The position numbers were made by a program, and so were the translations under genes. From assembly GCA_051530055.1 (NCBI GenBank), contig JBMGUZ010000051.1, positions 1 to 20,197 on the forward strand: a DNA stretch of 20,197 bases, written 5' to 3'. Numbering within the stretch: position 1 is the stretch's first letter; every line of letters begins with the position of its first letter. Below, piece after piece: positions 809-20,197 of the stretch. The notes beneath the pieces were generated by a model. That model made no database searches, had not been told where the DNA came from, and worked only from the letters and a program-made list of their open reading frames with translations. The DNA comes from Neoechinorhynchus agilis. Its lineage: Eukaryota > Animalia > Acanthocephala.

Positions 809-1664
809 CTACAACCGCTCACTTAGCTCGCGCCACAACTCATTGTACTCAGCACCGATTAAACCGGAAGTAGAATAAGAAAGGCCTAGAGAAAGACAAA
901 TCGGCCCATAGCTTTCAACCATATGGGGCATAACACCGAAGTAATAGTGTAAAGCCTTCTTCTCTTCAACACTCTCCCCCCTATAGAAAGGACAATTGAT
1001 CTGGGCCGCTGCTCTAGCTTTTTCGCCAAGAAAGATGTCATTATCTTTGGCTGTGAGACCCACTTCGTGGAGGAAACCGAGCGTAGTGTTTGGAAGAGTT
1101 CGGAAAAGGGAGTAATTCCCAGCCAAGGCAGTAACGATCTTAAAAACGTGGTCAGCTGATTGTAAAGACTTAACGGTCATCTGATACCCTACCGGCACAT
1201 AGGGTCGCGAGACTGGATTGCCGTTAATGGAATGCATAAGGCGGTTCCATTCTTCAGAGAGCCTCTCGGCATAGCCATCACCACCAGCTAGAACGGAGGA
1301 GATGTAAGAGCTTGTGAAACTGCTCACACCGTTTCCAGCTAGAGTGGAGATAGCATCTGGCGAGAGCCATCCCGAAGTACTGAACTGCCGAAAGTGCCTA
1401 TTTCTAAGCGAAGAGAGAAGTGTAGTGCGCCTAGTGGCGCGCCATTCGAGATTTTCTATTAACTCGCCCTGGCCATTCAACGTGTCCAACTCCTTACAGA
1501 ACGCAGCGCACAAACGCTGATTACGGGAGTTAAGCCCATGTGCCAAGGCGTGCAACATAGGTGGATTATTTCTATGGGAGAAACAAAGACCCATAAGTCG
1601 TTTCTTCGAGGTGCCAATCTTATTAAGAAGATAATGAGCACGCACTCGAACATCGTTACGAATC
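809..1664 (-). CDS. Intronless virus-like ORF of unknown family, 5'-truncated and fused to the 121-bp repeat (ORF track 809-1708)
   Basis: 284 aa open from IRNDVRV to ELSERL*. It has no introns in a genome with dense short introns, is more GC-rich than host intergenic DNA, and sits inside the EVE mosaic. The first 15 aa of the 299-aa ORF come from the satellite. 1327-1664 recurs at 19249-19586. Confidence 0.5.
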
Positions 1665-2287
1665 AAGGTGGTCGTTGCCACACAAATAACAGAATTTTTA
1701 AGTACCAATCATTGAATTGTCTATATCATGTTCCTCATTGCTATTCATAAACACAAACTTCCTTCTGTTGATCGTCAGGAACCCCAAAGTAGTCGTAGCC
1801 ACGCGAATAACAGAATTTTTAAGCGCCAATCATTGAATCGTCTATGTCATGTACCTCATTGCTATTCATAAACAGAAACTTCCTTCTGTTGTACTTCAGG
1901 CATCCCAAAGAAGTCGTTGCCACACAAATAGCAGAATTTTTAAGCACCAATCATTGAATTGTCTAAGTCATGTACCTCATTGCTATTCATAAACACAAAC
2001 TTCCTTCTGTTGCACGTCAGGAATCCCAATATGGTCGTTGCCACACAAATAACAGAATTTTTAAGCGCCAATCATTGAATCGTCTAAGTCATGTACCTCA
2101 TTACTATTCATAAACACAAACTTCCTTCTGTTGCACGTCAGGAATCCCAAAGTTGTCGTTGCCACACAAAGAACAGAATTTTTAAGCGCGAAACATTGAA
2201 TTGTCTAAGTCATGTACATCATTACTATTCATAAACACAAACTTCCTTCTGTTGCACGTCAGGCATCCGAAAGTAGTCGTAGCCACA
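1665..2287. repeat. 121-bp tandem repeat array, about 5.1 units
   Basis: The motif gtcgt(t/a)gccac recurs at 1671, 1792, 1913, 2034, 2155 and 2276 (period 121). Units differ by scattered substitutions. Confidence 0.97.
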
Positions 2288-2387
2288 TTTACTCAAAATT
2301 TTCTCCATTATGACCGTAATTAGTTAAATCATTGGAATGGTCAAGTTTCGCACCACGTACATTTTAGGGCTTGCTTGGTGTATCGCG

Positions 2388-2686
2388 CAGACAGTGGTTG
2401 TCATGGTTTTTATTTTAACGTATCTTATATCGAAATTGTATTCGTTTAGCATTATCGCCCAAAGCACTAACCTTCCGTTGGTCATCTTGCTGAGGTCCCT
2501 CTGGTACCTGAATATGTGCTTTAACGGTTGGTAATCAGTTTCCAACACAAAATGTCGCCCATAAAGGTATTAATGAAACCGCTTGATTGCGTGCACGATG
2601 GCCAAGGCTTCTTTGTCTATAGTAGCATATCGCACTTCAGTTGGATTAAGTTTTCGTGACGTCAACATTATTGGAACTTTTTTGTT
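2388..2686 (-). mobile_element. Ty3/gypsy LTR retrotransposon pol relic (RNase H domain)
   Basis: Translates as VPIMLTSRKLNPTEVRYATIDKEALAIVHAIKRFH*YLYGRHFVLETDYQPLKHIF...RLVLWAIMLNEYNFDIRY, matching the Ty3/gypsy RNase H pattern (SR.L...E..Y...EKEALA, YLYGR.F...TDH.PL, RW...L..Y.F.I.Y). In-frame TAA at 2570-2572. Confidence 0.88.
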
Positions 2687-2689
2687 TCA

Positions 2690-5110
2690 ATAGCGAAGAT
2701 TGTATCAATTAAATTTATTATATGAAAATTTTCGGCGTTTTCGTTGGCCTTCTTCGGTCACTCTAAAATTACAGTAGAATCAAATTTGAGAGCGTCTTAA
2801 TTCTATTTATCGGGGGTATTCTGAGGTTCAATTTATAGTCGGCTTTGTTGCCAGGAAACGTGTTTGTTCGCTGGATCATTATCGCTTCGATCGTCACTCT
2901 ATCGCGCTTTACGTCAGTGCGGGCCAGTACTTCGGTGCCATCAAAATTGATCGCATGTCCACTGCTATTGATGTGGGACACTATTGGCGAACTTACATCC
3001 GTCTTTTTGTCCACTGCTCTTCTGTGCTCGGCAATCCTTTTTAAATTGATGGTTTGTCCCACATATGAGAGATTGTAATTGGAACATGAAATCTTGTATA
3101 CACATCCGACCGGTACCTCCTCATTTTTCGGCCGGAGTACTCCTTGGAGAGTCCTGCCCTTTTGCTTAAACGTAGCGCACGCTTTGTCTCTATCGATTCT
3201 GTTGATCAGCGAATCTATCCCCGAATTCCATTGAACATCGACGAATGGCGTTTCAATGTAGCACTTCTTTTTCTCTTGATTGATTGTTCTCACATACGAA
3301 GCATACTTAGCCCTTCTCCTACATTTCTCAATGTATTTCTTTGGGTATCCACTCACTTTGAGATTGTTTAATAAATCCAATATAGTTCACAATTAAGGCG
3401 TACTGTATCCGAACAATATCGAAATGCCCTGATGAACATCGATCGGACTATTGCCAATTTGTGTTTGATCGGCTGAGCAGATATCCACGGAACAACCATG
3501 TGCGGAAACCCTTGCTTCCTGTAGACCGATGTCATAAAACCACTATTCGAACCTTTTGTTACTTGTACATCCAGAAATGGTAGAGACTCATTTTCCTCCT
3601 CTTCCATTGCCCATATTATATTTTGGTGGCAGCTATTCAGTTCCTTGCTCAGTTGTACAGTTGAACTTCTATTGGGATCCAGAATAATGAACGTATTGTC
3701 CACATATCGTAGCCAGAGCTTCACATCATTTAATTCTGACAAGTGTTCATCCCATTTTCTGATGTATATCTCAGCCAATAGTGGGTATAATGGGTTTCCC
3801 ACATCGCTAGCCCATCCGCCTGGTCATAATTCACACCCTCAAACTCAATGTTTGAATATTGTCTACAGAATTCAAGAAGCTGGCGCCAATTATTAGCTGA
3901 GAGCTTCCATTCTGTACATTTTTCGACCAATAGGTTTGTTGCTAGCTCAATCCCCTCCTCCACGGGTATCTTTGTAAATAAGGACGTTACATCCGCCGAA
4001 ACCATGAGACCGGTTTCGTTTGGATTCACCCTGCCCAATCGATCAATGAAATCTACACCCGAAGTGACCACATGGTCCGATGCCGGAAGGAGCTGTTTGA
4101 TAAATCCGGATAGTTTTCTCGACAACTTATAGTTATAGGATGAGTGTGCGGCGATGATCGGACGCGCTTTGACGGGTGTTTTGTGGATCTTTGCAAATAA
4201 ATACATTTTCGGCGTCTTAGCATTCACGGATCGTATTCTTTTAAACTCTTCTTCTGGTAGACCCTTCTGTTTCATTAATTTCAGAAGTAATCTGTTGAGT
4301 TCGTTCTCGCGTTTATTCGTGGGGCAGAAATCGAGCTTCTTGAATTCGTCAGCCTGTAGAAGTTCCATACCAAGTCTGTTGAACATTTCTTCGTTTGCCA
4401 CACAAAATCCATGTCCTTTATCGATTTTCAGTTTACGTAATTCATTCCGTGCCTTGATTACTTTGGGTCCAGTCAACATCTTTCCTGTTATATTCGAACC
4501 ACGATTCCTTCCGTTCTTAATAGCCATTTTGCAACTTCTTTCCAACTCCCATAATGGGATATTTTCGATTTGAATCGAAAGGTCATACACCATTTCCGCC
4601 ATCTTAGTTCTGAATTGTAGGGTTCCGATTCTCGGGGTCGGGATAAACTCAGGGCCGAATGACAAAAGTTCCAATACTTCTTCAGGCAGTATAATCTTCG
4701 ATAGGTTGATGACCTTATCTTTGTTCTCCGACGGAATGAATAGATGTCCATCGGCGAGCTTGAGAATTTCTGCCAAGTTATCGACCTCCATAATCAGGAT
4801 ATTACACCATTCGTCGTCCGTCAAGCAACCCAGAATACCACGATTGTTCTCTAATTGACGCTCAAGATGTTTCCTTTCTTTTTGGAGTTCCTTAATAGCG
4901 TTGTTCAATAACCAAGTTTGCATCGACTTCTGGGCTTTTGAGCCATCGAACCCATACGCCACAGATTGTAGTTCCAGAAATGAAGGAAGTACTTCATACC
5001 GTTTACAGCTTTCAAGGAATTCCGATGCATTTTTGTTGCGAACCATTTTCAACGATAATTTCTCCATTAGACGCAGTTTATCGCAAATCCGAAAGCAAAT
5101 TTTGAATTAG
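2690..5110 (-). mobile_element. Penelope-like retroelement (RT + GIY-YIG endonuclease), decayed
   Basis: RT motifs KxHK..ARPII, SADVTSLFTKIP, DGLAMGNP and LRYVDN, followed by GIY-YIG (CVYKISCS...YVGQT, RIAEH, HINSSGH, EAIMI). Split into ORFs 3730-5067, 3368-3802 and 2769-3380 by a 2-bp TG insertion near 3803 and a frameshift near 3375. Catalytic YVDD reads YVDN (3695-3697). Confidence 0.92.
2723..2760 (-). ncRNA. Degenerate minimal type I hammerhead ribozyme candidate at the PLE 3' end
   Basis: Minus strand reads TGA-CCGAAGA-A-GGC-caacgaaaac-GCC-GAA-AATT-T-TCA: core CUGANGA with U4 to C, stem II GGC/GCC, GAAA, palindromic AATT in place of helix III, and short stem I TGA/TCA. It lies just after the EN stop codon and is followed by AATAAA (2714-2719). 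Confidence 0.45.
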
Positions 5111-6216
5111 CGCGTCAGGAATTACTAAACGAACAAAATTGTATATGGCTAGCTAGCGTTATTACTTTCTCTAATCGTATTTGTTCAATTCTTTAAAAGT
5201 CATAAACGTGAAAGATCATCAAATTTGCAAACGTCAACAAATGATGGAAACAATGCATCAATAATCACGGTTGTTTCTCCAAAAACTGAAAAACAAATAA
5301 CTCAAGAACTATTGCAGCTATCGCAAATCCGAAAACAGATTTTGAATTAGCGCGTCAGGAATTACTAAACGAACAAAATTGTATATGGCTAGCTAGCGTT
5401 ATTACTTTCTCTAATCGTATTTGTTCAATTCTTTAAAAGTCATAAACGTGAAAGATCATCAAATTTGCAAACGTCAACAAATGATGGAAACAATGCATCA
5501 ATAATCACGGTTGTTTCTCCAAAAACTGAAAAACAAATAACTCAAGAACTATTGCAGCTATCGCAAATCCGAAAACAGATTTGGAATTAGCGCGTCAGGA
5601 ATTACTAAACGGACAAAATTGTATATGGTTAGCTTACGTAATAACGTCGGAAATCGCATTTGTTCAATTCCTCAACAGTCATAAACGTGAAAGATCATCA
5701 AATTTGCAAACGTCAACAAATGATGGAAACAATGTTGCATCAATAATCACGGTTGTTTCTCCAAAAACTGAAAAACAAATAACTCAAGAACTATTGCAGC
5801 TATCGCAAATCCGAAAACAGATTTTGAATTAGCGCGTCAGGAATTACTAAACGAACAAAATTGTATATGGCTAGCTAGCGTTATTACTTTCTCTAATCGT
5901 ATTTGTTCAATTCTTTAAAAGTCATAAACGTGAAAGATCATCAAATTTGCAAACGTCAACAAATGATGGAAACAATGCATCAATAATCACGGTTGTTTCT
6001 CCAAAAACTGAAAAACAAATAACTCAAGAACTATTGCAGCTATCGCAAATCCGAAAACAGATTTGGAATTAGCGCGTCAGGAATTACTAAACGGACAAAA
6101 TTGTATATGGTTAGCTTACGTAATAACGTCGGAAATCGCATTTGTTCAATTCCTCAACAGTCATAAACGTGAAAGATCATAAAATTTGCAAATGTCAACA
6201 AAGGATGGAAACAATG
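5079..6216. repeat. 240/242-bp tandem array (about 4.7 units) continuous with the PLE 5' end
   Basis: tcgcaaatccgaaa at 5081, 5321, 5561, 5803 and 6043. Two internal variants occur in order A,A,B,A,B. Confidence 0.95.
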
Positions 6217-6725
6217 TCCATCCTTATAATGCTCACTTTTGCTCTTCCACTCAACTCTGAAAGCTCGGGTTGGAACGAAAAATCTATGTCGGAACGTCCT
6301 CGTCTTTAGCAATTGAATCGGACGGAGAGTTGTTCCACACCCCACCTGACAAGTGAATTAACAGCCAGATTCTCCCGTTTCGATCAATCCCTGAACAACA
6401 TGAAGTTGAGGACAAGGCACTCTTCAAGGGCCGCAGCTGCAATTGTTCCTAACCTCACCAGCAGCATCCGCTTTTTCGATCTTCGAATTGTCCATTTTAT
6501 TTCGAATTGTCCAGTAAACAAAGCGCTAATAAAGGTGAAATTACCAAAGATATTAAAACGTTCTCTATATTGGGAAACACATTATTGATAAACAAAATGA
6601 ACGACAAGCGTCTAGTCAATGTTGAATAAATACCGGAAACAAAGGCGAGCACTCACCTAAAAGCGGTTTGCGATCTCCTCGAATTCTATAAGATCGACTT
6701 GAATATCGAATAAAGAAATAGGAAA

Positions 6726-7318
6726 ATGAGGATTCCCATTATCGTACTGATTATCGCGATAGGACTACTAGTCAACATATCAGCGCTTTCCGTCCTACCG
6801 GAAACGAAAAACAAAATTACGCCGTTCTCCTATTATAGCGATTCGCCAATACTATTTAAATCCAGAGATGGAGAAAATCAGCAAAAAGACGACGAATCCG
6901 ATGAGATGAGCAGTGGACCTCCAATGATGGACGAAAGCTCGTCAAATCAAGGTGATTTTAATGATATCGATTCATCAGAAGAGAACGAAGCCATATCGAA
7001 GCCTGGAGAAAATCAACAAAAAGACGACGAATCCGATGAGATGAGCAGCGGACCTCCAACGATGTACGAAAGCTCATCAAATCAAGGTGATTTTAATGAT
7101 TTCGATTCATCAGAAGAGAACAAAGGCATATCGAAGCCAGGAGAAAATCTGCAAAATGACGACGAATCCGATGAGATGAGCAGTCGACCTCCAGTGATGG
7201 ACGAAAGCTCTACAACATCTCCTTATCTAAAGTTGCCTTTTCTGTCAAAGAAAGACGTCGGTAACTTTTAAACAAATGGATTTTGCTGTGTCCATTTTCC
7301 ATCTATTGAGAAAAATAG
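6726..7318 (+). CDS. Secreted acidic (D/E/S/N-rich) repeat protein, about 180 aa
   Basis: Hydrophobic signal peptide MRIPIIVLIIAIGLLVNISA, then about 2.5 copies of a 45-aa unit. A probable terminal intron 7261-7310 (GTAACT...GAG, 50 nt) would end the protein ...DVEK*; unspliced, it stops at 7271. Confidence 0.75.
6870..7212 (+). repeat. 135-bp coding tandem repeat
   Basis: ggagaaaatc at 6870, 7005 and 7140; unit GENQQKDDESDEMSSGPPMMDESSSNQGDFNDIDSSEENEAISKP. Confidence 0.95.
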
Positions 7319-8412
7319 GCCGATATTTACTACTCCGGAGCGTCACTTTATTCAACAATTCTAAGCTATCCGGGCAATGTTAACAATGGACGACTTCAAG
7401 AAACGTTGTAGCTCCGGGATATTTTAGATTATCCTGCTCTCGATCAGTCGGACCGAGAAGCTTACAACTTTAAGCATTTTGTTGAGTTTAAATTATTTTC
7501 ATGTAATAAATTATCAGTAGTCATTTATGGAGGAAGTCTAATAATGACGAGGGTACGGATGATGAAGGTGTCAATGGCTTTAAAAAGTTGATACTTTGGT
7601 AACAGTATCATTAATCAACGTCATTTCGTTTCCCAAACACTGATTTTTCATTGACCGCTTTCAATGATTATATGGATTTCCATCACGAATCGACCGCCTT
7701 TAATAATCGCGACCGCTAAAAAATTGATTCATCGAAAAACTTCACCAACCATTAAGTTGAACTTTTTAAAAATCAATGCTCTGTAGTTCGTTAATCAATA
7801 AACTCTCATAAATGAGAATTGTGCGAAATTTAAAAGGTCTTTTTGGCGGACATTCATAAAGATTTCATCGTTACGCCATGGAATACTCGCTGTTCCTTTA
7901 AGGAATTAAATAATCCGATTCGAACCATTTGATGATTTCGGTTCTTTTTTTCGTCAATAATACAAGTAAAAGAACGTTCGTAAGATGTTATCGATGACAA
8001 CATTCACCAATCTGTTCGCCGTGAATATCGCGCTGATTATCGATATTATCCACGAAATCCCAAAAACCTAAGCGCTGATTCCGTATATCGATAAGTTACG
8101 TTGAATCTACGAGCAGATTTAAATGCTAAAATAGATCCTTAATTTTTGTTAAAGGCTTCCATTGTGTTCATGATGAACATTTGAACGAAAGGTGCCAATT
8201 TGTTTTTTGAAATGGGAATTTTTTCAACAAAGACCGAAGAAGGAAAAACCTAAGCACTTAATAATTTAAAAATTTGCGTGCTTAAAACAAGTTTTAATTC
8301 TTTAAAAGGAGACTAACAAACTGTTTAACGCCATTCCAAGCCACTGGGCAAAAGGAAAAACCTCAGTACTTCATCATTTTAAGTTTGGATGAAATGAAAA
8401 AATATCTTAGTT

Positions 8413-10044
8413 TTTGGTACGTGTGGGTATCGAATCTTTTAAATTTTTTGTAAAAACCATGATTACAGAAAGCTCAAAAGATTAACGGGATGGATATTTT
8501 CGCCTTTATGCAATCATTAACACAATCACCGAGGCCACATTCGTCCTTTGTTTTTTGTTTTGAGCAACAAAACCGATACGTATTAATTCGCAATATCGTT
8601 CCTTGCTCGATTGTCTTTCCCAAGGAGACGGATAACATTTTCAAATAAAGACATGAATCCAGAAATAAGCAAAATCCTTTTACGTTTAATTCAACGATTG
8701 AGCGATAATATTCCGACAAGTGACAGTCAACGGTTTGAAAACCACATTTTAATTATGGAGGCTACAATGGAATCCATGCGGATTCTAGCGAGCCAAAATG
8801 CGACGAGCAAACCAACGCCAGGTGAGTTCCACAAAAACCTCATATCGATTCCATTATTTCAAATGAGTTTAGGAGTGTCATTTCCTTCAATGAATTCAAC
8901 TCGAAGTAACGAGCCAGAAAATCTTGATAGAACATTTGCCGGTTTGTTGAGAATGGCACCTTCGAACACTGCGGCGTCCGCATTGTCAGTGGCCGCAAAC
9001 TTAGCAAACGCCCAGCAACAGTGTTTCCGAATAACTTCCGAACAGTCCAAGGAGCAAAAATCGGCCGAAACAAATCGAATGATTGGCGATAATAACCAAG
9101 AACTTGAAGATTTAATGCAATTCATAATTCAAAATGCCGATGCCATCGCTGAGAGTCGTCCGCCGCAAATCTTTCCGAGAATAAATGATAATAATCGAGC
9201 CGGCGTCATCAGTCTCGAGATGGTAGATGAACGCCAAGATTCAGTCGGCAATCCTCAAGCTTTTCTTCAAAAAACATCGCAGCCAACAATGCCTTGGATT
9301 TGTGCAAAATGCGGAACTTTCTTAACTCCATCGTGGCATCAATATAAAGGTTCGGTCTACTGCTTTTCATGCGCTGACTCGGTCGCATTTTCCGAATGGG
9401 AACCGGCCATTCGCGAACTATTTGAAAAATTTCTGGATTCAGAATGGATTCCTCCTGTTCTCGATCCGGACCACAGCACAAACATTCACCAAAGAACTCA
9501 AATCTCAACACCACGAAGATCGGCAAGGTCACAGGAGGAACTCGAGATTGAATACACAGCAAAAATTAGTGAACCAACTCCAGAAAACATTCCATCGGTT
9601 CACAATTCGCCGGTTGAAAAATCATCTGAGGTTTTTATCCATCAAACTGACCATCAAACGGAAACTAATTTGTTTCAGGCAAATGAAGGAGCCACCAATT
9701 CTCTTCCACCAATAGAAATTGATAGCAGTACAAACAGAAAAAAAGATAAAGAAGGAGAATCTCAATGTAGAGATAGTTCGTCTGAGAGCAATTTTGTAAG
9801 ACGAGAGTAATATTGATAAATAAGTTTTTATTTGTACGTCTGCATTAAATTATTTCCTAAATACGATAGCGAACGGTGGTTAGAGTGAAATCAGAATCGT
9901 AAACTTTTAGCGATCCGGGCTTTGTAGATGTGTTCTTCACAATCCCGGATATAAAATATTTTATCGAGATTTTTCGAAAGATAAAGCCTCGCCAAGCGAT
10001 GCAGAGCTCCATGAGGTTTGTCGCTTAACAACTTTCAACAACAA
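8413..10044 (+). repeat. 1.63-kb direct duplication, copy 1 (copy 2 at 12987-14618)
   Basis: Constant offset of 4574 bp from tttggtacgtgtggg to actttcaacaacaa, with substitutions only. Copy 2 is followed by an AAC-rich expansion, after which similarity briefly resumes. Confidence 0.97.
8653..9810 (+). CDS. Orphan protein with a divergent GATA-like C4 zinc finger, copy 1
   Basis: First ATG is 8653 (the ORF-track start at 8611 is TTG). Finger CAKCGTFLTPSWHQYKGSVYCFSC (C-x2-C-x16-C-x2-C with TPxW) at 9301-9372. S/E/T-rich C-terminal tail. Possible in-frame intron at 8822-8872. Confidence 0.7.
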   Translation: MNPEISKILLRLIQRLSDNIPTSDSQRFENHILIMEATMESMRILASQNATSKPTPGEFHKNLISIPLFQMSLGVSFPSMNSTRSNEPENLDRTFAGLLRMAPSNTAASALSVAANLANAQQQCFRITSEQSKEQKSAETNRMIGDNNQELEDLMQFIIQNADAIAESRPPQIFPRINDNNRAGVISLEMVDERQDSVGNPQAFLQKTSQPTMPWICAKCGTFLTPSWHQYKGSVYCFSCADSVAFSEWEPAIRELFEKFLDSEWIPPVLDPDHSTNIHQRTQISTPRRSARSQEELEIEYTAKISEPTPENIPSVHNSPVEKSSEVFIHQTDHQTETNLFQANEGATNSLPPIEIDSSTNRKKDKEGESQCRDSSSESNFVRRE

Positions 10045-10555
10045 ACAAATTGAATTCTTTTCATTCTTATAGCAGAAATGTGCAGAGCATAAAAACGACA
10101 AAGCGGACGATTCGGAGTCATGCAAAACAACTAAAATCTTTTTTTGGATGACTATTGAGACGAGGCTTCCCCGCGAAACATCGCAATAAGACTTTTTCGG
10201 TCTTCGGGAAGTGCGATTCTCGTAAAGAAGACACTGAACTGTTTTACGACTTGCTTCATATGATCAACCAACAGCACTCGGCTAACAACGAGTAACCGCA
10301 ACTGGTTATAACAATCATTTACAAACTCACGTTAACTATACTATTCAGCCATAGACCCATTGACTTGTAAGGATGTAGGTTGAACATCAATGTAGTAGGA
10401 AAATCATTTGTAAGAGGTGATATAACTGCTTAACGAAAGACGGACAACGAAACTCACAATTTCGCGTTTTGGCACACTTAACGTAGTATAAAAGTTTGGG
10501 GAAAAAGATTGAACTTCGCTCACATTCCAGTTGAACAAACTTCTCCAATCGAAAA

Positions 10556-12248
10556 ATGAAGCCGTTAGTATCTGCAGAGGTTTTGGGATCTTGTGAGTTC
10601 GTATCACTAGAGCCACGAAGATTATCATGTCTGGAGCTATCGGTTTGATTGCATTGGCATCGATTATTTCTCTGATTGTTGCGCTCACCGTTACTTTTGT
10701 TCACAAGGACGCCGTGACCTCTGCTCCAACTGGTGATGCAAAAGGTAAGCACTTTTTAGAAACTTTAATAGCTTATTACGCTTTTTCGTTGCAGCTCAAT
10801 GTAAGTTCGATTTGCTTTGTTAGAAATCAATACCGAGTCCTATAAGTTTCCAAAGCCAAAACATTGTACGAAGTAAAAGGAGGAGTCAATGGCGGACAAA
10901 GATTTATTCAGGCGGGAAAATACATGCGAAGAAACTTTGATTTCCATCATGAACCAAAGGTTAGTCGGGATTCTTAAAAGGCTACAGTATTTATTTACGA
11001 TTAAGATGGAATTTCGCGTCGAAGAACCGATACGAAATGTTCAAAAAAGAGGGTCAATGCGAGTTCGTGATCTAAAGGGTCAATGCGAGTTCGTGATCTA
11101 AATAAAATATTTGAACTTGCGGTAAGACGATTCAGGTCTGGCTTTCGTTTTGAATTTCATTTTTCTATTAGATGAATGGTCGAGTGGAAGAGATGGCTCT
11201 GAATGTCTTACCTATACACCGACCTCATGGAGTTCAAGTAGAAATGGTCAATGAGCTACCAGGGTAAATCATAAGATAAAGCTTCAAGTTTTTTATTATC
11301 TGCCTATAAAAGAGAACAATTTGAAGTGATTTACCGCGCATTCTACAAGCTTCCTTGCGATTGCTCTGAAAAACGCCTTGAGGATCTTATTGTAATTCTG
11401 GCTCAAATCGAGATTTTGACCAACGATGGAAAACGTGATGTTCTAAACAGTCTTAAATCGGATATATTGGAAGGTATTTTTAAACTTTAAAGAAAATCTC
11501 ATACTGCTTTTTCCTAACTTATCGATGATAATTATGTATATGACGACGCATTCGACGATATATTAGAGGATGATGATCCATGGGAACAAGAGTGCGGAAT
11601 ATGTAAGGAGTGATGTCTTCTTTTATCCTTATTTTGTTAATTCATTTTAAAGTGTACGAAGTCATAGTAACTTACACGGATGACGGAACACTGGGGGATA
11701 AAGTAGAGATTCTCAATTAAATGCTAGGATATAATTCTTTTAAAAGCGTTGAGAATTCCTACCATGATTTGAATACACTCGAACAAGATGAATTCAATAA
11801 CGATGCAATTACGCTCGCCCTTTCTCAAGGATCCGAATATTCGAGTGACCAGGATCCTGTTTATGTCGAGTTCGACAGCTATGGTCAGCGCCCCGTATTC
11901 TTATTGTATAACTTATTTTCATTTCAGAAGTCATTAATCCCGACAGCCCAACCGAGTACAAAATGCACCTCCGAATGTTCATTGATCTAACATGTGAGAC
12001 TTGCATTGAAACCATAACCGAGAAGCTCAGCAAAGAACTCACTATTGTCTTATCAGCGAGTACTGTCGTCTTGCCAGCCGGTGGAAAAGTTGAATTCATT
12101 GGTTGGTTCTGCTAAAATTCCTTCTATTCTCATATTCACATATATAGATTCCAATACAAGACTCAGCCATGACCAAGCTTTGAGTTTTTACGAAAACAGG
12201 GAAGCAATCGATCCTGAGAAATTCACAACACCGGCACCAGTTCAATAA
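10556..12248 (+). pseudogene. 12-exon gene for a signal-anchored/secreted protein of about 378 aa (repaired), with two apparent lesions
   Basis: Inferred introns: 10564-10610, 10745-10794, 10801-10846, 10960-11005, 11122-11171, 11264-11312, 11474-11524, 11603-11652, 11703-11753, 11884-11927 and 12102-12147 (44-51 nt, all GT donors). Splice phases give a continuous frame (MKPATKIIMSGAIGLIALASIISLIVALTVTFV...PAPVQ*) once the 26-bp duplication at 11050-11101 is removed. The intron 7 acceptor is CG rather than AG. Confidence 0.72.
11050..11101 (+). repeat. Perfect 26-bp tandem duplication inside exon 5
   Basis: agggtcaatgcgagttcgtgatctaa at 11050-11075 and 11076-11101; causes a frameshift with TAA at 11099-11101. 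Confidence 0.97.
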
Positions 12249-12986
12249 AGCTGATCACGGATACTCATTAGACCAGATCGTTAATACCTTCAAAATCATC
12301 TCAAAGTTACACTGTCATATTGCATGAATTTCCAAACAAGAGTTTCTCCGCATTTCTAATTTTTGACTAATAATTACGGTCATTAATTCAGTAATCGCTT
12401 TTACGTCGCTAATCTGTTATTACCAGTTATATCAGTCGCTGTCAAATTGCAACATCCTCCAAAAAATATTGATTTTATATCGTTAAAACGCTGAGTTGAT
12501 TCTTAACTAAATCCTAGTTTGCTCGCCGTAGAATTCTTTTATAAAAGATAACTTCCAAACTCTCGATTTGAACATAATCGATTATAGAATTTTCCGTTGG
12601 GCCAAAATCTAGACATCGATAAAAGGTAGCGCTCTCGTCTACAGGCCACCGCTACTTGATGTGATGTATTTCAATAGTTATTCAGCGGCCGTGTGGTGTG
12701 CGCGTTCATATTGCGCTTGATATGTCGAAAGTTCAACGCCACCGGTCGCTGAGTTAGACGGCGGCCCCTTCAAGTGCGGCTTAGCGCCTCCGTTGTGCGA
12801 AAGTTCCGTCCTGAATCTGTACCTATGCCGAAATCCCGGGTTTTAAAGTCGACTCTTTAATAATAAAAACCCTCGGGACACTTGCATCGAGAGGGATCAG
12901 GATAAGTCGAAGGGATACAAAGGAATATGGCCGTGAGGCCCAAAAGAAGATGTCACAAGCAAACAAGAGTGTATGAGGCCTTGGCG

Positions 12987-14618
12987 TTTGGTACGTGTGG
13001 GTATCGAAACTTTTAAATTTTTCGTAAAAACCATGATTACAGAAAGCTCAAAAGATTAACGCGATGGATATTTTCGCCTTTATGCAATCATTAACACAAT
13101 CACCGAGCCCACATTCGTCCTTTGTTTTTTGTTTTGAGCAACAAAACCGATACGTATTAATTCGCAATATCGTTCCTTGCTCGATTGCCTTTCCCAAGGA
13201 GACGGATAACATTTTCAAATAGAGACATGAATCCAGAAATAAGCAAAATCCTTTTACGTTTAATTCAACGATTGAGCGATAATATTCCGACAAGTGACAG
13301 TCAACGGTTTGAAAACCACATTTTAATTATGGAGGCTACAATGGAATCCATGCGGATTCTAGCGAGCCAAAATGCGACGAGCAAACCAACGCCAGGTGAG
13401 TTCCACAAAAACCTCATATCGATTCCATTATTTCAAATGAGTTTAGGAGTTTTATTTCCTTCAATGAATTCAACTCGAAGTAACGAGCCAGTAAATCTTG
13501 ATAGAATATTTGCCGGTTTGTTGAGAATGGCACCTTCGAACACTGCGGCGTCCGCATTGTCAGTGGCCGCAAACTTAGCAAACGCCCAGCAACAGTGTTT
13601 CCGAATAACTTCCGAACAGTCCAAGGAGCAAAAATCGGCCGAAACAAATCGAATGATTGGCGATAACAACCAAGAACTTGAAGATTTAATGCAATTCATA
13701 ATTCAAAATGCCGATGCCATCGCTGAGAGTCGTCCGCCGCAAATCTTTCCGAGAATAAATGATAATAATCGAGTCGGCGTCATCAGTCTCGAGATGGTAG
13801 ATGAACGCCAAGATTCAGTCGGCAATCCTCAAGCTTTTCTTCAAAAAACATCGCAGCCAACAATGCCTTGGATTTGTGCAAAATGCGGAACTTTCTTAAC
13901 TCCATCGTGGCATCTATATAAAGGTTCGGTCTACTGCTTTTCATGCGCTGACTCGGTCGCATTTTCCGAATGGGAACCGGCCATTCGCGAACTATTTGAA
14001 AAATTCCTGGCTTCAGAATGGATTCCTCCTGTTCTCGATCCGGACCACAGCACAAACATTCACCAAAGAACTCAAATCTCAACACCACGAAGATCGGCAA
14101 AGTCACAGGGGGAACTCGAGATTGAAGGCACAACAAAAATAAGTGAACCAACTCGGGAAAACATTCCATCGGTTCACAATTCGCCGGTTGAAAAATCATC
14201 TGAGGTTTTTATCCATCAAACTGACCATCAAACGGAAAATAATTTGTTTCAGGCAAATGAAGGAGCCACCAATTCTCTTCCACCAATAGAAATTGATAGC
14301 AGTACAAACAGAACAAAAGATAAAGAAGGAGAATCTCAATGTAGAGATAGTTCGTCTGAGAGCAATTTTGTAAGACGAGAGTAATATTGATAAATAAGTT
14401 TTTATTTGTACGTCTGCATTAAGTTATTTCCAAAATACGATATCGAACGGTTGTTAGAGTGAAATCAGAATTGTAAACTTTAAGCGATCCGGGCTTTGTA
14501 GATGTGTTCTTCACAATCCCGGATATAAAATATTTTATCGAGATTTTTCGAAAGATAAAGCCTCGCCAAGCGATGCAGAGCTCCATGAGGTTTGTCGCCT
14601 AACAACTTTCAACAACAA
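12987..14618 (+). repeat. 1.63-kb direct duplication, copy 2
   Basis: Collinear with 8413-10044 at offset 4574. Confidence 0.97.
13227..14384 (+). CDS. Orphan protein with a divergent GATA-like C4 zinc finger, copy 2
   Basis: Same length as copy 1 with 13 aa differences from ATG to stop. Finger CAKCGTFLTPSWHLYKGSVYCFSC at 13875-13946. Confidence 0.7.
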   Translation: MNPEISKILLRLIQRLSDNIPTSDSQRFENHILIMEATMESMRILASQNATSKPTPGEFHKNLISIPLFQMSLGVLFPSMNSTRSNEPVNLDRIFAGLLRMAPSNTAASALSVAANLANAQQQCFRITSEQSKEQKSAETNRMIGDNNQELEDLMQFIIQNADAIAESRPPQIFPRINDNNRVGVISLEMVDERQDSVGNPQAFLQKTSQPTMPWICAKCGTFLTPSWHLYKGSVYCFSCADSVAFSEWEPAIRELFEKFLASEWIPPVLDPDHSTNIHQRTQISTPRRSAKSQGELEIEGTTKISEPTRENIPSVHNSPVEKSSEVFIHQTDHQTENNLFQANEGATNSLPPIEIDSSTNRTKDKEGESQCRDSSSESNFVRRE

Positions 14619-15723
14619 CAATAATAACGACGACAACAATTGCAAACAAATTAAATTCCTTTTTTATAGGAATTTTTGTGACCACAAATAGCAAAGACGA
14701 TTTTCGGCGTATTTTTTGGAAACCAATCTCAGGTTTTGTTTTTCAATTGAAACTTAGCCGGGCTGTGGTAATGATAAAGAAAATCTTTATTTTTGAGCTT
14801 TCATCGTCTTGCTCGAAAATCTACAAAGGCTCATGGAGATGTGAAGTTTGCTAGCGACATCGAAGCCGGGACTTTAGCAGTTCTTGGGCTTTTTTGAGAT
14901 GATTTCCTATTTTTCATTCTCTACGGCCCGGAATGTAGGTTCCTTGGCGATTCCATTGCTGACAAAATTCGATTTGCACTTTATCGAAACTTTGTTTACG
15001 AAATTAACTGAGAACGATATTTGGTCAATTGCAATCGCGATTTCGCTTGGATGGGCCGTTGATATGATAAAGAAAATCTTTAATTTCGAGCTTTCGCAGT
15101 CTTACGGCTGACAGGAAACGTTCGTAAACTCCTGAATCCGGACGCAAAATCTATGCTATCTCCCGTACTTGAACCTTTAGAAAATAGCCGAAGAATCAAA
15201 GGATTCAATTTATTTTAAGATGAGCTTTCTAAAGACTATTTTCAAGTGCTGGATTTGTCCAAAAATTATCCAAAAAAGTGAATTATTGTGTTAAACAAAG
15301 AAGCAAACTGCGACTGTAGAGGTTTCTTTTTTTATCCGAGTCAAAAACGTATCGATGCTTAATTTTAAGAATCATTCATATTATTGATTTCAAGTTAAGT
15401 CTCCGCTGGATTTAATGAAAGTTCTGGACTTTTTATAAAAGCTAAAATGAATTTATTTGATTATTTCGCTACAACAGGAAAATTTAGCACCCGAACAAAA
15501 ATCGATGGTTTATTGAAACCAATCAATAATAGCGAATATGTGTGTGAAAGCGTCAATCGCTCACAATAAACTTTATTTCAAGCTAACATCTCGCTTTATC
15601 TGTGATTCCAAGCTAAGAAACCCCAAGGATGTCTTCATCCCATTGTTGGAACCACAGAATACGCGAGGATTCGTTAATCCCCGCTTTTCACTTGCCCCAT
15701 TAAGCAATCCGATTCAGTTGAAC

Positions 15724-17415
15724 TCAATTTTCTCCTTGAAAATTGCCTGCATTCTCATCCAAGCGTTTCGCAGCTTCCTCGTCGACCCGATTATAGTCTT
15801 CCAAACTATGTATATAAAACAACTTAGGATCGATTGTTGTTATTGTCCTGAAAAGCAAATCCTCTGTAACGGGCCTTTCAATACTTTCTTTGATCGCCAT
15901 TGCAGTTTGGAAAGTATTGGCGATGTCTTTATCGTTTCTGACCCGAATCATCTTCCATTCACCTCCCTCGACAACGCATTCGATTATCTTTTCATTGCAT
16001 TGAAACAATTGAGCCGTGAGTCGAATCCGGGCGAACGGTTCATTGTACTTTCTAACATACAGAAATCAACCAGAACCGATTTTTCGCTTTTCCATATCGT
16101 GGCCAGGAATTACCAATTTGAAGTCGACCGAATTCAATCGTGTAGGTTTATACTTTAGCAGCTCGTAAAATGTTCCAAAAATATAAGGCATATAAACGGG
16201 CTGAAATATAAGACCGTCTGTCTCATGAGGGAGTTCTCTTTTAAACTTCTCATTCAAAAGATGTTTACTGTGTTTGAGGCCGTAAAAATCCTTTCTTCGA
16301 ATCCCAAACGGTTCTCGACTTCGGTCTATCGCTCCGCATTCCATTGCACGATGACGAGGCAAAATAATCTCTCTCAAAATGAGTTCCAAGCGTTTATCAA
16401 AGTCGAGTTCTTTACCGGCAGGATGCCCGTTGAATGCCAAGACGTCGAATATAAGAAATCGAGGAATCCGTTTGCCTTCAACTACATCTTCCACCATCTC
16501 TCCATCAAGTAAAGTCTGACGAAGATGATCTTTGGTGCCACGTTTCGTCACAAACGTCAGGTTTCTCACTTTAAAGATTGAATTGCGCCGGTCAATCATA
16601 TAAATTTCGTTTTTCGCTCGAATTAAACACAAATACCGGGTTCCGTCATCCTTCCAGCTTACGCGATAATCCAACTGCCGCAATGTTTGGATATTATTGA
16701 GTGTCATTGATACCGGCTGGCTACCGATGAATCCTCTTCCATGACTTTCTGGACAAAGGTCCTTTATGTTTTGTCGAATTTCGTTGATTTTTCTTCGATC
16801 TCTGTCGTATCTTAGTCGATAGATGAACGGAACATCTACCGAGAAGCCCTCTGATAAACCTGTTGGTTGGTTTACTTCCTCATTCGAACTATCCAGAATG
16901 GAAGGATTTGGTTTTTCCGCTAGCGCGTCGATTTTCCTTTTTGATTTAAAATCTGCCGACTTTGGGTCAACTGCAACCCTTTTTCTACGTGGACTTTGTT
17001 CCCGGGTTTCCGAGTCCGTTGTTTGCGCCATTTGATTCGATCTTTTACGAAAACCGATGTCTTCATTTGATCTTTTTCTCGATTTCATGTGTTCATCCTC
17101 CTCTTTAATTATTTGAGTCTTGAGCGAAGCATTTAACTCAGTTTGATGATCAGCGGACGATTGCGAAACTCTTCGCTTCGACCGAATGCTGTGCTCGTCC
17201 GAATCACTTATGGATCGTTTTCGTCCACCAGCGAACTTCTTTCTCTTAATATCGGCGATATCGATTACGTCGTTTGCTTCTTGCTTTGATCCATAATTTG
17301 TACTGGTTTCGATACTCACGGCTTCTGTCGAATTCATGGTGGATGCCGGATCCTTGGTATCAATTTTGCGCTTTAATAGCACGCCGGTTCGCCAACTCGA
17401 GTACCGTAATCTCAT
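15724..17415 (-). pseudogene. RNGTT: mRNA capping enzyme guanylyltransferase domain (RNGTT-like), intronless, no triphosphatase domain, one in-frame TGA
   Basis: FIGSQPVS, motif I WKDDGTRY (KxDG), III LLDGEMV, IIIa FLIFDV, IV DGLIFQP, V LKYKP, LNSVDF and VI RVRNDK. ORFs 16066-17415 and 15724-16008 are in the same frame, joined by TGA (16066-16068) plus FLYVRKYNEPFARIRLTAQ. No HCxxGxxR motif; the N-terminal ~190 aa are K/R/S/E-rich low complexity. Confidence 0.88.
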
Positions 17416-18614
17416 AAATCTATAGAATGCTTTAATCGATGTCTTATTAATGATTTTGATTTAATCGCATCCTTATCTTTGCAGCAGTTCGATCTTTTAG
17501 TGAAGAATTCAACCTCGAACACATGACGGTCTCTGAGTCTACTCATTTTGGGTAAAATCCAACGGCAAATGGGAATCTTCGTAAGGGCGACCACTTCTCC
17601 GATGGGTTCTGGAGGGTGATTACGAACAAGAAACCGTATCTTCTTCTAATGTGGCAGCCGGCTAACGAAGCCGTGGAATAAATTTCTTATCAAGTTCTGT
17701 GAATTTCTATTAAAACCTTTCCCTTTTATTAGAATGTCGCATGTTCATTACAATAAAATTCGGTAGCACGTTCATTCGAAGGCAACGCTTGAGGACGATT
17801 TCAGCATCTCCTGATTCTCAGTGTATTTGATCATTTCGAAGAAAATCGGCTTGCTCAATTGAATTTTGATCAGTCGGTGGATTGTCCACTGATTTCTAAA
17901 CCGCTTGTTATCTTTTTCGAATTTATCCAAATTAAGCAACTGAAAACAAATGCGGCTACAAAATACTAATTAAATAGCCCGTGAGATTTTTAGGTTTAAA
18001 GGAAATTTCAGTTCAATTCTTCCTTTGGGAGCATCGAGTCCAGTTAGACAAAATGCGAACATCGAATAAATAAAATGACTTTATATTTGAATTCCCGTCA
18101 CTTAAACGCAATGGGTTTTTAGCGTTTCAATTTTTAGGCCATGAATCGATATTTCTGATTGAAAAATAACGATTTTTTATATATTGCCACCATAAAGTAT
18201 CGATTCTAAATTTTCATTCGAAGAAGCTTAAAACTGTCCGTCGGTACAATAATAAACATTTTCTATTCAGCACTTTAGAAAACCCAATAAAATCGCTTTA
18301 AACCTAAGACTTTGAGCAAGCAAACAAAATGACTACTTTTCCCGAATTGATTTATCGATAAAAAGTCGACTAAAAATTTTAAATGTGCGCCGAATAATAA
18401 AACGGACCCGAATTCTGTCGTTTTTTCGTAACTTCCAAAACGCCGTCCGCTTTCTAAAGCGCTGCACCCGCATTCCTCGCGTCGTTCTGTTTTGTTCTCC
18501 GGTGAATCGAGCGACTTTGGCGATGGTGGAAAATCGTTTACGTTCGTACCGAGGACGAATGGAAGCGTCTCAATGCAAGTGAGTAATATTTTGAAATTGT
18601 GGGAAATCTCTGTT

Positions 18615-19056
18615 TTTCCTTTGAAATAATGTTGAATTTTCGTATTTCCAACGACAGCAGTATGCAAACCATGTAACAAGTTGTAGAGCTCGAAAGTTGA
18701 TGGGACGAACTCATTGGCGACTTTAAGTGTCGGGCGGGCCATTCTGAAAATGTCAAATGCAGTAAGGAGCGTATATTGAGGAGCAACCTTAAAATGGGCG
18801 GATTTGGCCGATTTCTGATCTTGTTCTGTATCACGTACAGTTCGGGGTTCTAGAGTTTTGGTTGTCTCGGAATCCTTTGTTTGTGTCATTTCCGTTTTAT
18901 CAAAGATTGGACGTTGTTTATCACCCATGTAAGGTTTTTCAACAACTGTAAGACGAGCAACGGCTGTTTCGGGGTCTTCTGGGTTTGAAGGAGTGACTCG
19001 ATTCGTGCCTGATTCTCTATCGTAATTGCGTCTCATATTTGGACAACAAAAGAAGT
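18615..19056 (-). other. Endogenous viral element, partitivirus-like capsid N-terminal fragment, copy 2 (ATG 19036)
   Basis: Same sequence as 1-442. After about HYFKG the frame appears to read into flanking sequence and stops at 18275 (253-aa ORF, probably chimeric). Confidence 0.6.
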
Positions 19057-19248
19057 TGCCGAATAGTATTTTAGCTCATTCTCGGGGGAGGAATTAGTCC
19101 GGACCGCCGGAAGATCGGATACTCTAAGAAGGCCGAACTGTATTAAAGGATAGAAGTAATAGCCGGGGTCGTAGTTCCATGACAGCCTGATACCTGACGT
19201 GTAAGGAACTTGTAATCTACCCATGAATTGGAAATCAAGCGTATTGTT
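19057..19248 (-). other. Virus-like segment unique to EVE copy 2
   Basis: Stop-free in ORF 19033-19251 (NNTLDFQFMGRLQVPYTSGIRLSWNYDPGYYFYPLIQFGLLRVSDLP...). It has sharp junctions with shared blocks on both sides and no ATG start. Family not recognised. Confidence 0.35.
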
Positions 19249-19855
19249 CACCGTTTCCAGCTAGAATGGAGATAGCATCTGGCGAGAGCCATCCCGAAGT
19301 ACTGAACTGCCGAAAGTGCCTATTTCTAAGCGAAGAGAGAAGTGTAGTGCGCCTAGTGGCGCGCCATTCGAGATTTTCTATTAACTCGCCCTGGCCATTC
19401 AACGTGTCCAACTCCTTACAGAACGCAGCGCACAAACGCTGATTACGGGAGTTAAGCCCATGTGCCAAGGCGTGCAACATAGGTGGATTATTTCTATGGG
19501 AGAAACAAAGACCCATAAGTCGTTTCTTCGAGGTGCCAATCTTATTAAGAAGATAATGAGCACGCACTCGAACATCGTTACGAATCTTATGGTCTATACT
19601 ATCAGATTTTTCCGCTATGGTTGTGGGCCCAACGAAAGCAGCTTCATACTTGAAGTTTCGCATGGCAGCCTCCATGTCGCGGGTGAATGATCCATTTTTG
19701 TCGGTAGGAACAAAAGTACTGAAATTGCGGTACTTTTCGCGTCTTTCCTTCTTTTCCACTCGAACATGCTCCATATCGCCAAGAGTGGCTTTAGCTCTAC
19801 TTATATAGGCCAGGAAAGCAGTGCCGAGATCAATTGGACTAGTCATGTACCTCAT
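19235..19855 (-). CDS. Virus-like ORF, copy 2: extra N-terminal 87 aa plus the shared block, 3'-truncated
   Basis: MTSPIDLGTAF...DHK continues in frame into IRNDVRV...AGNG (shared with copy 1), then ends 4 codons after the junction at 19249. Confidence 0.5.
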   Translation of the reverse strand: MRYMTSPIDLGTAFLAYISRAKATLGDMEHVRVEKKERREKYRNFSTFVPTDKNGSFTRDMEAAMRNFKYEAAFVGPTTIAEKSDSIDHKIRNDVRVRAHYLLNKIGTSKKRLMGLCFSHRNNPPMLHALAHGLNSRNQRLCAAFCKELDTLNGQGELIENLEWRATRRTTLLSSLRNRHFRQFSTSGWLSPDAISILAGNGEQYA

Positions 19856-20197
19856 TGCTATTCATAAACAGAAACTTCCTTCTGTTGTACTTCAGGCATC
19901 CCAAAGAAGTCGTTGCCACAGAAATAACAGAATTTTTAAGCGCCAATCATTGAATTGTCTATATCATTTTCCTCATTGCTATTCATAAACACAAACTTCC
20001 TTCTGTTGCACGTCAGGAATCCCAAGGTGGTCGTTGCCACACAAATAACAGAATTTTTTAGCACCAATCATTGAATCGTCTAAATCATGCACCTCACTGC
20101 TATTCATAAACACAAACTTCCTTCTGTTGCACGTCAGGCATCCGAAAGAAGTCGTAGCCACGCGAATAACAGAATTTTTAAGCGCCAATCATTGAAT
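19841..20197. repeat. 121-bp tandem repeat array, second locus (runs off the right edge)
   Basis: Same unit as 1665-2287; gtcgt(t/a)gccac at 19910, 20031 and 20152. Confidence 0.97.

Follow-up and report, generated by a model that had tools for sequence, protein, structure and literature searches.

The question raised by this locus is the origin of two incomplete, virus-like coding sequences in the DNA of a parasitic worm. Both lie on the unplaced contig JBMGUZ010000051.1 of the Neoechinorhynchus agilis assembly GCA_051530055.1. The host is a thorny-headed worm (phylum Acanthocephala) parasitic in fish, and the whole contig (20,197 nt, hereafter the window) was analysed. A first-pass annotation had combined the two copies into one 371-aa protein. 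According to the analysis described here, the two copies are very probably pseudogenised, differently deleted remnants of one endogenous toti-like double-stranded RNA (dsRNA) virus element in the N. agilis nuclear genome. Judged by homology, the combined coding sequence would be an internal stretch of the long first open reading frame (ORF1) of such a virus, the presumed capsid gene. In Totiviridae, ORF1 encodes the capsid and is followed by ORF2, which encodes their RNA-dependent RNA polymerase (RdRp).

Structure of the two copies

In the ORF lists, copy 1 is represented by a 299-aa ORF and copy 2 by one of 206 aa, both on the minus strand (coordinates of the copies in Table 1). Self-comparison of the window yielded two blocks common to both copies, block B (338 nt, 99.7% identity) and, downstream of it, a second block of 442 nt (99.3% identity). 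Copy 2 carries ~87 codons upstream of B (block A, counted from the ATG at 19846), and copy 1 carries ~172 codons downstream of B (block C). These coordinates agree with the earlier sum of 87 + 284 = 371. The ORF lists and the self-comparison thus bore out the arrangement reported at first pass, with A+B in copy 2, B+C in copy 1, both on the minus strand and neither complete.

Copy 1, which runs off the left end of the contig, consists in this order of ORF1-derived sequence (B, C and more, without A), ~240 nt without recognisable relative, and a piece of the ORF2 N-terminal region. Copy 2 consists of A+B, a 68-codon piece from further down ORF1, the same ~240 nt, and the same piece of the ORF2 N-terminal region. 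The 68-codon piece, located between B and the shared downstream block, is missing from copy 1. The shared downstream block itself comprises the ~240 nt without recognisable relative and ~200 nt that are 100% identical to a stretch of P0018, a long N. agilis relative described below. In P0018 this stretch lies between the presumed capsid region and the RdRp domain, and a neighbouring part is conserved in a second N. agilis locus (L001, see below). Different upstream sequences lead into the shared downstream block in the two copies, and the point of entry is the same to the base. Two overlapping minus-strand ORFs were also observed at this block, at 18275-19036 (253 aa) and 18538-18834 (98 aa). 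The 98-aa ORF is in the frame matching P0018; the 253-aa ORF is in a different frame and had no relative except the window's own gene call.

The boundaries were located with Tandem Repeats Finder (TRF) and junction alignment. Both copies abut a 121-bp satellite at their 5' ends, but the junction falls at a different position of the viral gene and in a different phase of the satellite unit in each. In copy 2, the ATG codons at 19846 and 19855 both lie within the satellite array beginning at 19843, and homology to relatives begins at ~19840, a few bases inside the element boundary. In copy 1, the first 15 codons of the 299-aa ORF are read from the satellite array beginning at 1664. The stop codon closing the proposed 371-aa ORF is premature, because homology to relatives extends past it. 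The start and stop of a stand-alone 371-aa protein were accordingly not found at the limits of the homologous region: the start is satellite sequence, and relatives extend both ways.

Compared with long relatives, copy 1 is truncated on its 5' side at the satellite, which removes A and everything upstream. It also contains one short stretch of lost homology with four stop codons, across which the frame changes, and one large internal deletion of ~570 codons. Copy 2 is likewise truncated at the satellite and has internal deletions of ~470 and ~340 codons with frame changes; no stop codons were found within its retained homologous pieces. Both copies are pseudogenes, being truncated and internally deleted and, in copy 1, also affected by stops and a frame change. 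No functional protein would be expected from either; if the copies have any role, it might be as RNA sources. A small inversion was considered for the degenerate stretch of copy 1, where weak plus-strand protein matches occurred. It was set aside: in neither orientation did the DNA align better than shuffled sequence.

Relatives in N. agilis and in a tapeworm virus

The window pieces matched N. agilis proteins at expectation values (E) of 1e-101 to 1e-153, a similarity far beyond chance. Among 5.8 billion proteins, the single match of the 299-aa piece was P0001, a 511-aa N. agilis hypothetical protein that spans A, B and C collinearly at ~75% identity and continues for ~120 further residues. 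A phmmer search with P0001 against 1.84 billion representatives returned 15 matches, 14 of which were N. agilis proteins or gene calls of this contig. In a profile search of the 5.8 billion proteins, every match fell into one or other of these two groups. All nine N. agilis phmmer matches that were looked up are hypothetical proteins of this worm, as are three more from the profile search. At least 12 N. agilis hypothetical proteins have A, B and C in collinear order. Three large scaffolds (7.8, 16.4 and 19.4 Mb) and several small contigs carry the N. agilis relatives, and copies of the family are intronless, multicopy, truncated and frame-broken. Several relatives have 190-795 residues upstream of A in the same polypeptide, and others have >600 residues after C. 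With residues preceding A in relatives, an ATG in satellite and a premature stop, the 371 residues do not form the natural unit for which they had been taken.

P0018 is an uninterrupted 2578-aa ORF on a different, 19,643-nt contig of the same assembly and belongs to the 90% cluster of P0002. Its first 369 residues correspond to a satellite-derived start followed by A, B and C, 99.5-100% identical to the window copies. From residue 368 onwards there is a second ORF1 unit (79-85% identical), which is itself 99% identical to P0002. In the Pfam search, residues 2121-2300 of P0018 scored 30.7 bits against RdRP_1 and 23.7 bits against RdRP_4, above the respective cutoffs of 23.9 and 22 for these viral RdRp families. 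The RdRp domain follows A-B-C within a single ORF, ~1100 residues further downstream. The N. agilis genome therefore does contain A, B and C contiguously, though only as a minor portion of a very long reading frame that extends from capsid to polymerase. The earlier statement that the protein could be rebuilt only by combining the two window copies did not hold, given the contiguous and near-identical A+B+C of the P0018 contig. The first-pass annotation had also allowed that A and C might never share a molecule; they occur together in both P0001 and P0018. An uninterrupted frame of the length of P0018 in a DNA assembly points to some constraint or to an integration that is very young.

The same ORF1-to-ORF2 order was found in L001, the 21.5-kb chromosomal locus of P0001. 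There it is broken by frame changes, because of which the locus is annotated as three 'genes'. Relatives (P0018 and L001), but not the window, thus show the gene and, downstream of it within one element, an RdRp of toti type. The three tandem 'genes' of L001 were also considered as an N-P-M gene row of a mononegavirus; this was ruled out, as they represent one toti-like ORF1 and ORF2 split by frame changes. A further N. agilis relative, P0003 (7.8-Mb scaffold), corresponds in its first 416 residues to the end of A, to B and C, and to sequence beyond. Its last ~360 residues form a different polymerase-like tail with a GDD stretch and a weak RdRP_4 match (E 0.065). No BLAST similarity was detected between this tail and the RdRp part of P0018, and it may belong to a second toti-like lineage or to a rearranged copy.

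The sole relative outside N. agilis was ORF1 of Schistocephalus solidus toti-like virus 1 (SsTV1; QJD26155.1, 1696 aa), which was the 15th phmmer match to P0001 (E 4.1e-5). Pairwise BLAST returned three collinear high-scoring segment pairs (best 2e-11). Using hhalign, the N. agilis family profile aligned with residues 820-1170 of SsTV1 ORF1 over 334 columns (96% probability, E 4.4e-9). The window DNA compared directly with SsTV1 ORF1 by tblastn gave an E of 1.8e-7. Every family member matched SsTV1 ORF1 residues 820-990, with more collinear matches in addition, at ~27% identity. By these searches, the homology to the ORF1 of a genuine toti-like virus (order Ghabrivirales) is significant.

The viral origin proposed at first pass is thereby supported, both by the homology to SsTV1 ORF1 and by the near-identical copy in one ORF with an RdRp domain. 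The sequence is not the new viral protein family that had been suggested, but a slice of a long toti-like ORF1. The absence of a GDD motif had been recorded correctly: the window contains no recognisable RdRp motifs, as would be expected because the sequence belongs to a capsid-side gene and not to a polymerase.

Origin of the copies and alternative explanations

The window is host (animal) DNA, since satellites, a retroelement and a metazoan-type messenger RNA (mRNA) capping-enzyme gene are present on the contig. On the contig as assembled, the virus-derived sequence is continuous with this host genomic DNA, and decay or rearrangement after integration is seen in both copies. The source element would have been a DNA copy of a toti-like dsRNA virus genome, with ORF1 (presumed capsid) followed by ORF2 (RdRp). 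In the order of events that we infer, the viral RNA would have been reverse-transcribed by retroelement machinery and then integrated into a repeat-rich region, where the insert would have been cut short on its 5' side against the 121-bp satellite. The satellite-plus-insert unit would subsequently have been duplicated at least three times in the repeat-rich region, and each duplicated copy would have lost different internal parts.

Several observations weigh against this interpretation. The capsid function of ORF1 would follow solely from the gene order of Totiviridae. Pfam searches with both window ORFs and 15 relatives returned nothing for the target region, hence no capsid match, and sequence searches of the PDB with P0001, P0003 and P0018 returned nothing meaningful. 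AlphaFold2 models of P0002 and P0001, built from alignments of 10-13 sequences, were too poor to judge a totivirus-type capsid fold (mean predicted local distance difference test scores of 30.6 and 38.1, respectively). The link to a bona fide virus would run through a single distant sequence of ~27% identity, together with the physical RdRp link of the relatives. No RdRp sequence with recognisable motifs was found in the window, and its ORF2-derived piece was identified via P0018 alone. Finally, instead of two real loci, the common joining base of both copies at the shared downstream block could indicate assembly paths that cross a repeat.

The last point leads to the alternative that the partial copies are different assembler paths through one repeated locus with contiguous A+B+C, in which case the sequence would still be an endogenous toti-like fragment. 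The contig is small and unplaced and comes from a hybrid MaSuRCA/Flye assembly (PMC12690905). The shared blocks are 99.3-99.7% identical, both copies enter the downstream one at the same base from differing upstream partners, and a third arrangement is present on another small contig. The common joining base and the third arrangement could stem from real repeat recombination or from assembler paths. Arguing for two separate copies, the satellite is met at different viral-gene points and in different unit phases, the 3' neighbours of the copies differ as far as the contig shows, and a few substitutions separate the copies, so that they are not one collapsed sequence. Assembler paths as the source of the two partial copies were therefore judged unlikely, although with a real chance of being correct.

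Somewhat less probable still is that the fragments have been kept as useful, either as a source of antiviral small RNAs or as a truncated capsid-like protein interfering with a related virus. In other animals, small-RNA source loci adjoin satellites and transposon debris, and the position of the window copies beside such sequences resembles them. The family is large, and one relative retains a very long open frame. For fungi, endogenous copies of toti-like capsid genes are reported to be conserved and to interfere with related viruses (PMC2805616, PMC6166632). Both window copies, however, are truncated and internally deleted, copy 1 contains stops, and the apparent start codon is satellite sequence. 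A wider form of this idea, for which a similarly small chance is allowed, is that the family, which is large and still includes one uninterrupted capsid-to-RdRp ORF of 2578 codons, does not consist of dead fossils alone, and that transcripts of satellite-embedded copies with nested deletions, such as the window copies, defend the worm as small RNAs or decoy proteins against a relative in circulation. In that case, Acanthocephala would have their first described locus of a virus-host arms race.

A non-viral acanthocephalan host gene family, resembling the ORF1 of a tapeworm virus by chance or through capture of a host gene, is very improbable. All close relatives are annotated animal proteins, and no Pfam or PDB match to any viral capsid was obtained. 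Yet in P0018 the ORF extends as far as a viral RdRp domain, and L001 has ORF1 followed by ORF2 as well. The family copies are moreover intronless, multicopy, truncated and frame-broken, and among the 1.84 billion representatives the sole homologue from another organism is a virus.

Hardly any credence was given to an exogenous virus assembled along with the sample (the extra segment, co-infecting virus or satellite virus of the first-pass annotation): the pieces are virus-like and one relative ORF is intact over 2578 codons, but the assembly was made from DNA reads and toti-like viruses have dsRNA genomes without a DNA stage, on one contig, the pieces are embedded as broken copies of the ORF1 interior among satellites, a retroelement and a metazoan capping-enzyme gene, the scaffolds with relatives measure 7.8-19.4 Mb, and scans of IMG/VR and JGI metagenome contigs found no relatives.

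Known systems and the remaining contents of the contig

As remnants of an endogenous toti-like element, the two copies were compared with four known systems. For SsTV1, Hahn et al. (ISME J 2020, PMC7305300) report two ORFs, the second of which is the RdRp, and no copy in the genome of the tapeworm. Residues 820-1170 of its ORF1 are collinear with the end of A, with B and C, and with sequence beyond. As in the N. agilis relatives, the homologous region is located in the first of two ORFs and is preceded by a long stretch, which comprises ~800 residues in SsTV1. It differs in sequence (~27% identity) and in being an exogenous RNA virus of a tapeworm, reportedly absent from the host genome, whereas in the acanthocephalan the window sequences are broken DNA copies.

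Since 2009, toti-like genes for capsid and polymerase have been known as endogenous copies in eukaryotic genomes (Taylor & Bruenn, PMC2805616). The elements described there from fungi, arthropods and other eukaryotes are, like the present ones, nuclear DNA copies of capsid and/or RdRp genes, often multicopy, fragmentary and adjoining retroelements. Compared with these elements, the host phylum here is Acanthocephala, the viral lineage lies nearest to a toti-like virus of a flatworm, and the copies are embedded in 121-bp satellite with nested deletions.

In the acanthocephalan Pomphorhynchus laevis, multicopy endogenous elements resembling a mononegavirus RdRp were reported on unplaced contigs (PMC12548735). 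They share with the N. agilis copies that they are RNA-virus fossils in an acanthocephalan genome, multicopy and on unplaced contigs. They belong to another virus realm (negative-strand RNA), derive from a polymerase gene and have no sequence relation to the N. agilis family. These polymerase fossils were the only acanthocephalan viral fossils found in the searchable literature, and no exogenous virus is known for acanthocephalans (PMC12548735). The passages of the N. agilis genome paper shown by a search do not discuss viral sequences (PMC12690905).

The fourth comparison concerns layout. The ORF1 of arthropod and crustacean toti-like viruses (e.g. the shrimp myonecrosis virus group) encodes a polyprotein of ~1600-1700 aa, with the capsid domain in its second half and the major capsid protein as its C-terminal part, and is followed by the RdRp. 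With A-B-C beginning ~500-800 residues from the ORF1 start, its position would agree with the onset of such a domain, although no sequence or structural match was obtained and the resemblance is one of layout only.

Toti-like endogenous elements are already known elsewhere, and the N. agilis copies are viral fossils of an ordinary kind in an animal group that has been little studied. For palaeovirology, toti-like viral fossils gain a host phylum, Acanthocephala, and the tie of the family to a tapeworm toti-like lineage hints at an old association with parasitic worms. For annotation, at least 12 N. agilis 'hypothetical proteins' are virus-derived.

The features of the window are listed in Table 1. 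Scans of the window with Rfam and for transfer RNA (tRNA) genes were empty.

Table 1. Features of contig JBMGUZ010000051.1 (positions on the forward strand)
Feature	Coordinates	Strand	Method or remark
Copy 1 of the endogenous toti-like element	1-1663	minus	tblastn with P0001, P0002, P0018, P0019, P0021 and SsTV1 ORF1
121-bp satellite array, 5.2 units	1664-2287	no strand	TRF, repeat families, junction alignment; adjoins 5' end of copy 1
74-aa fragment adjoining the retroelement	2324-2548	minus	weak RT_RNaseH match
Retroelement remnant, three ORFs (445/144/203 aa)	2769-5067	minus	reverse-transcriptase-like motifs
240-bp satellite, 4.7 units, AT-rich	5079-6217		TRF; 482-bp higher-order period also readable; between retroelement and repeat-protein ORF
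181-aa ORF, hydrophobic N-terminus	6726-7271	plus	2.5 tandem 45-aa acidic repeats (135-bp period)
1.6-kb direct duplication, 98% identity	8413-10048 and 12987-14621	plus	
449-aa ORF, mRNA capping-enzyme guanylyltransferase domain	16066-17415	minus	domain at residues 207-437
Dispersed repeat, ~400 nt	18199-18592		borders copy 2 on its 3' side
Copy 2 of the toti-like element	18580-19842	minus	tblastn; lower bound approximate (dispersed repeat begins there)
121-bp satellite, 2.9 units	19843-20197	no strand	TRF, junction alignment; runs off contig end; adjoins 5' end of copy 2

The 449-aa ORF matched PF01331 at 2.8e-59, and its best matches in the PDB were to mammalian capping enzyme (1e-66). At its N-terminus, ~200 residues form a basic, serine-rich stretch where the metazoan enzyme has its triphosphatase domain, and the ORF does not include the C-terminal OB domain. 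The ORF may be one exon of a host gene. The setting of a giant virus or other large DNA virus, which a capping enzyme can suggest, was ruled out by the best matches being to the mammalian enzyme.

The layout of the retroelement remnant is Penelope-like. It gave a weak match to the GIY-YIG endonuclease (E 5e-4), below the cutoff. Each copy of the 1.6-kb duplication contains a 399-aa ORF with a four-cysteine zinc-finger-like motif; no Pfam family was assigned to these ORFs, the only match being a weak one to LIM/PINCH (E 0.018). The 181-aa ORF possibly encodes a secreted repeat protein, and its sole match was a weak one to SH3BGR, below the cutoff.

The dispersed repeat had no tRNA or Rfam match. 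Four copies of it were found in L001, at 72-76% identity (positions 3546-3849, 14368-14655, 17927-18240 and 20552-20855 of that locus), one of them within the endogenous element there. It is probably a short non-autonomous mobile element.

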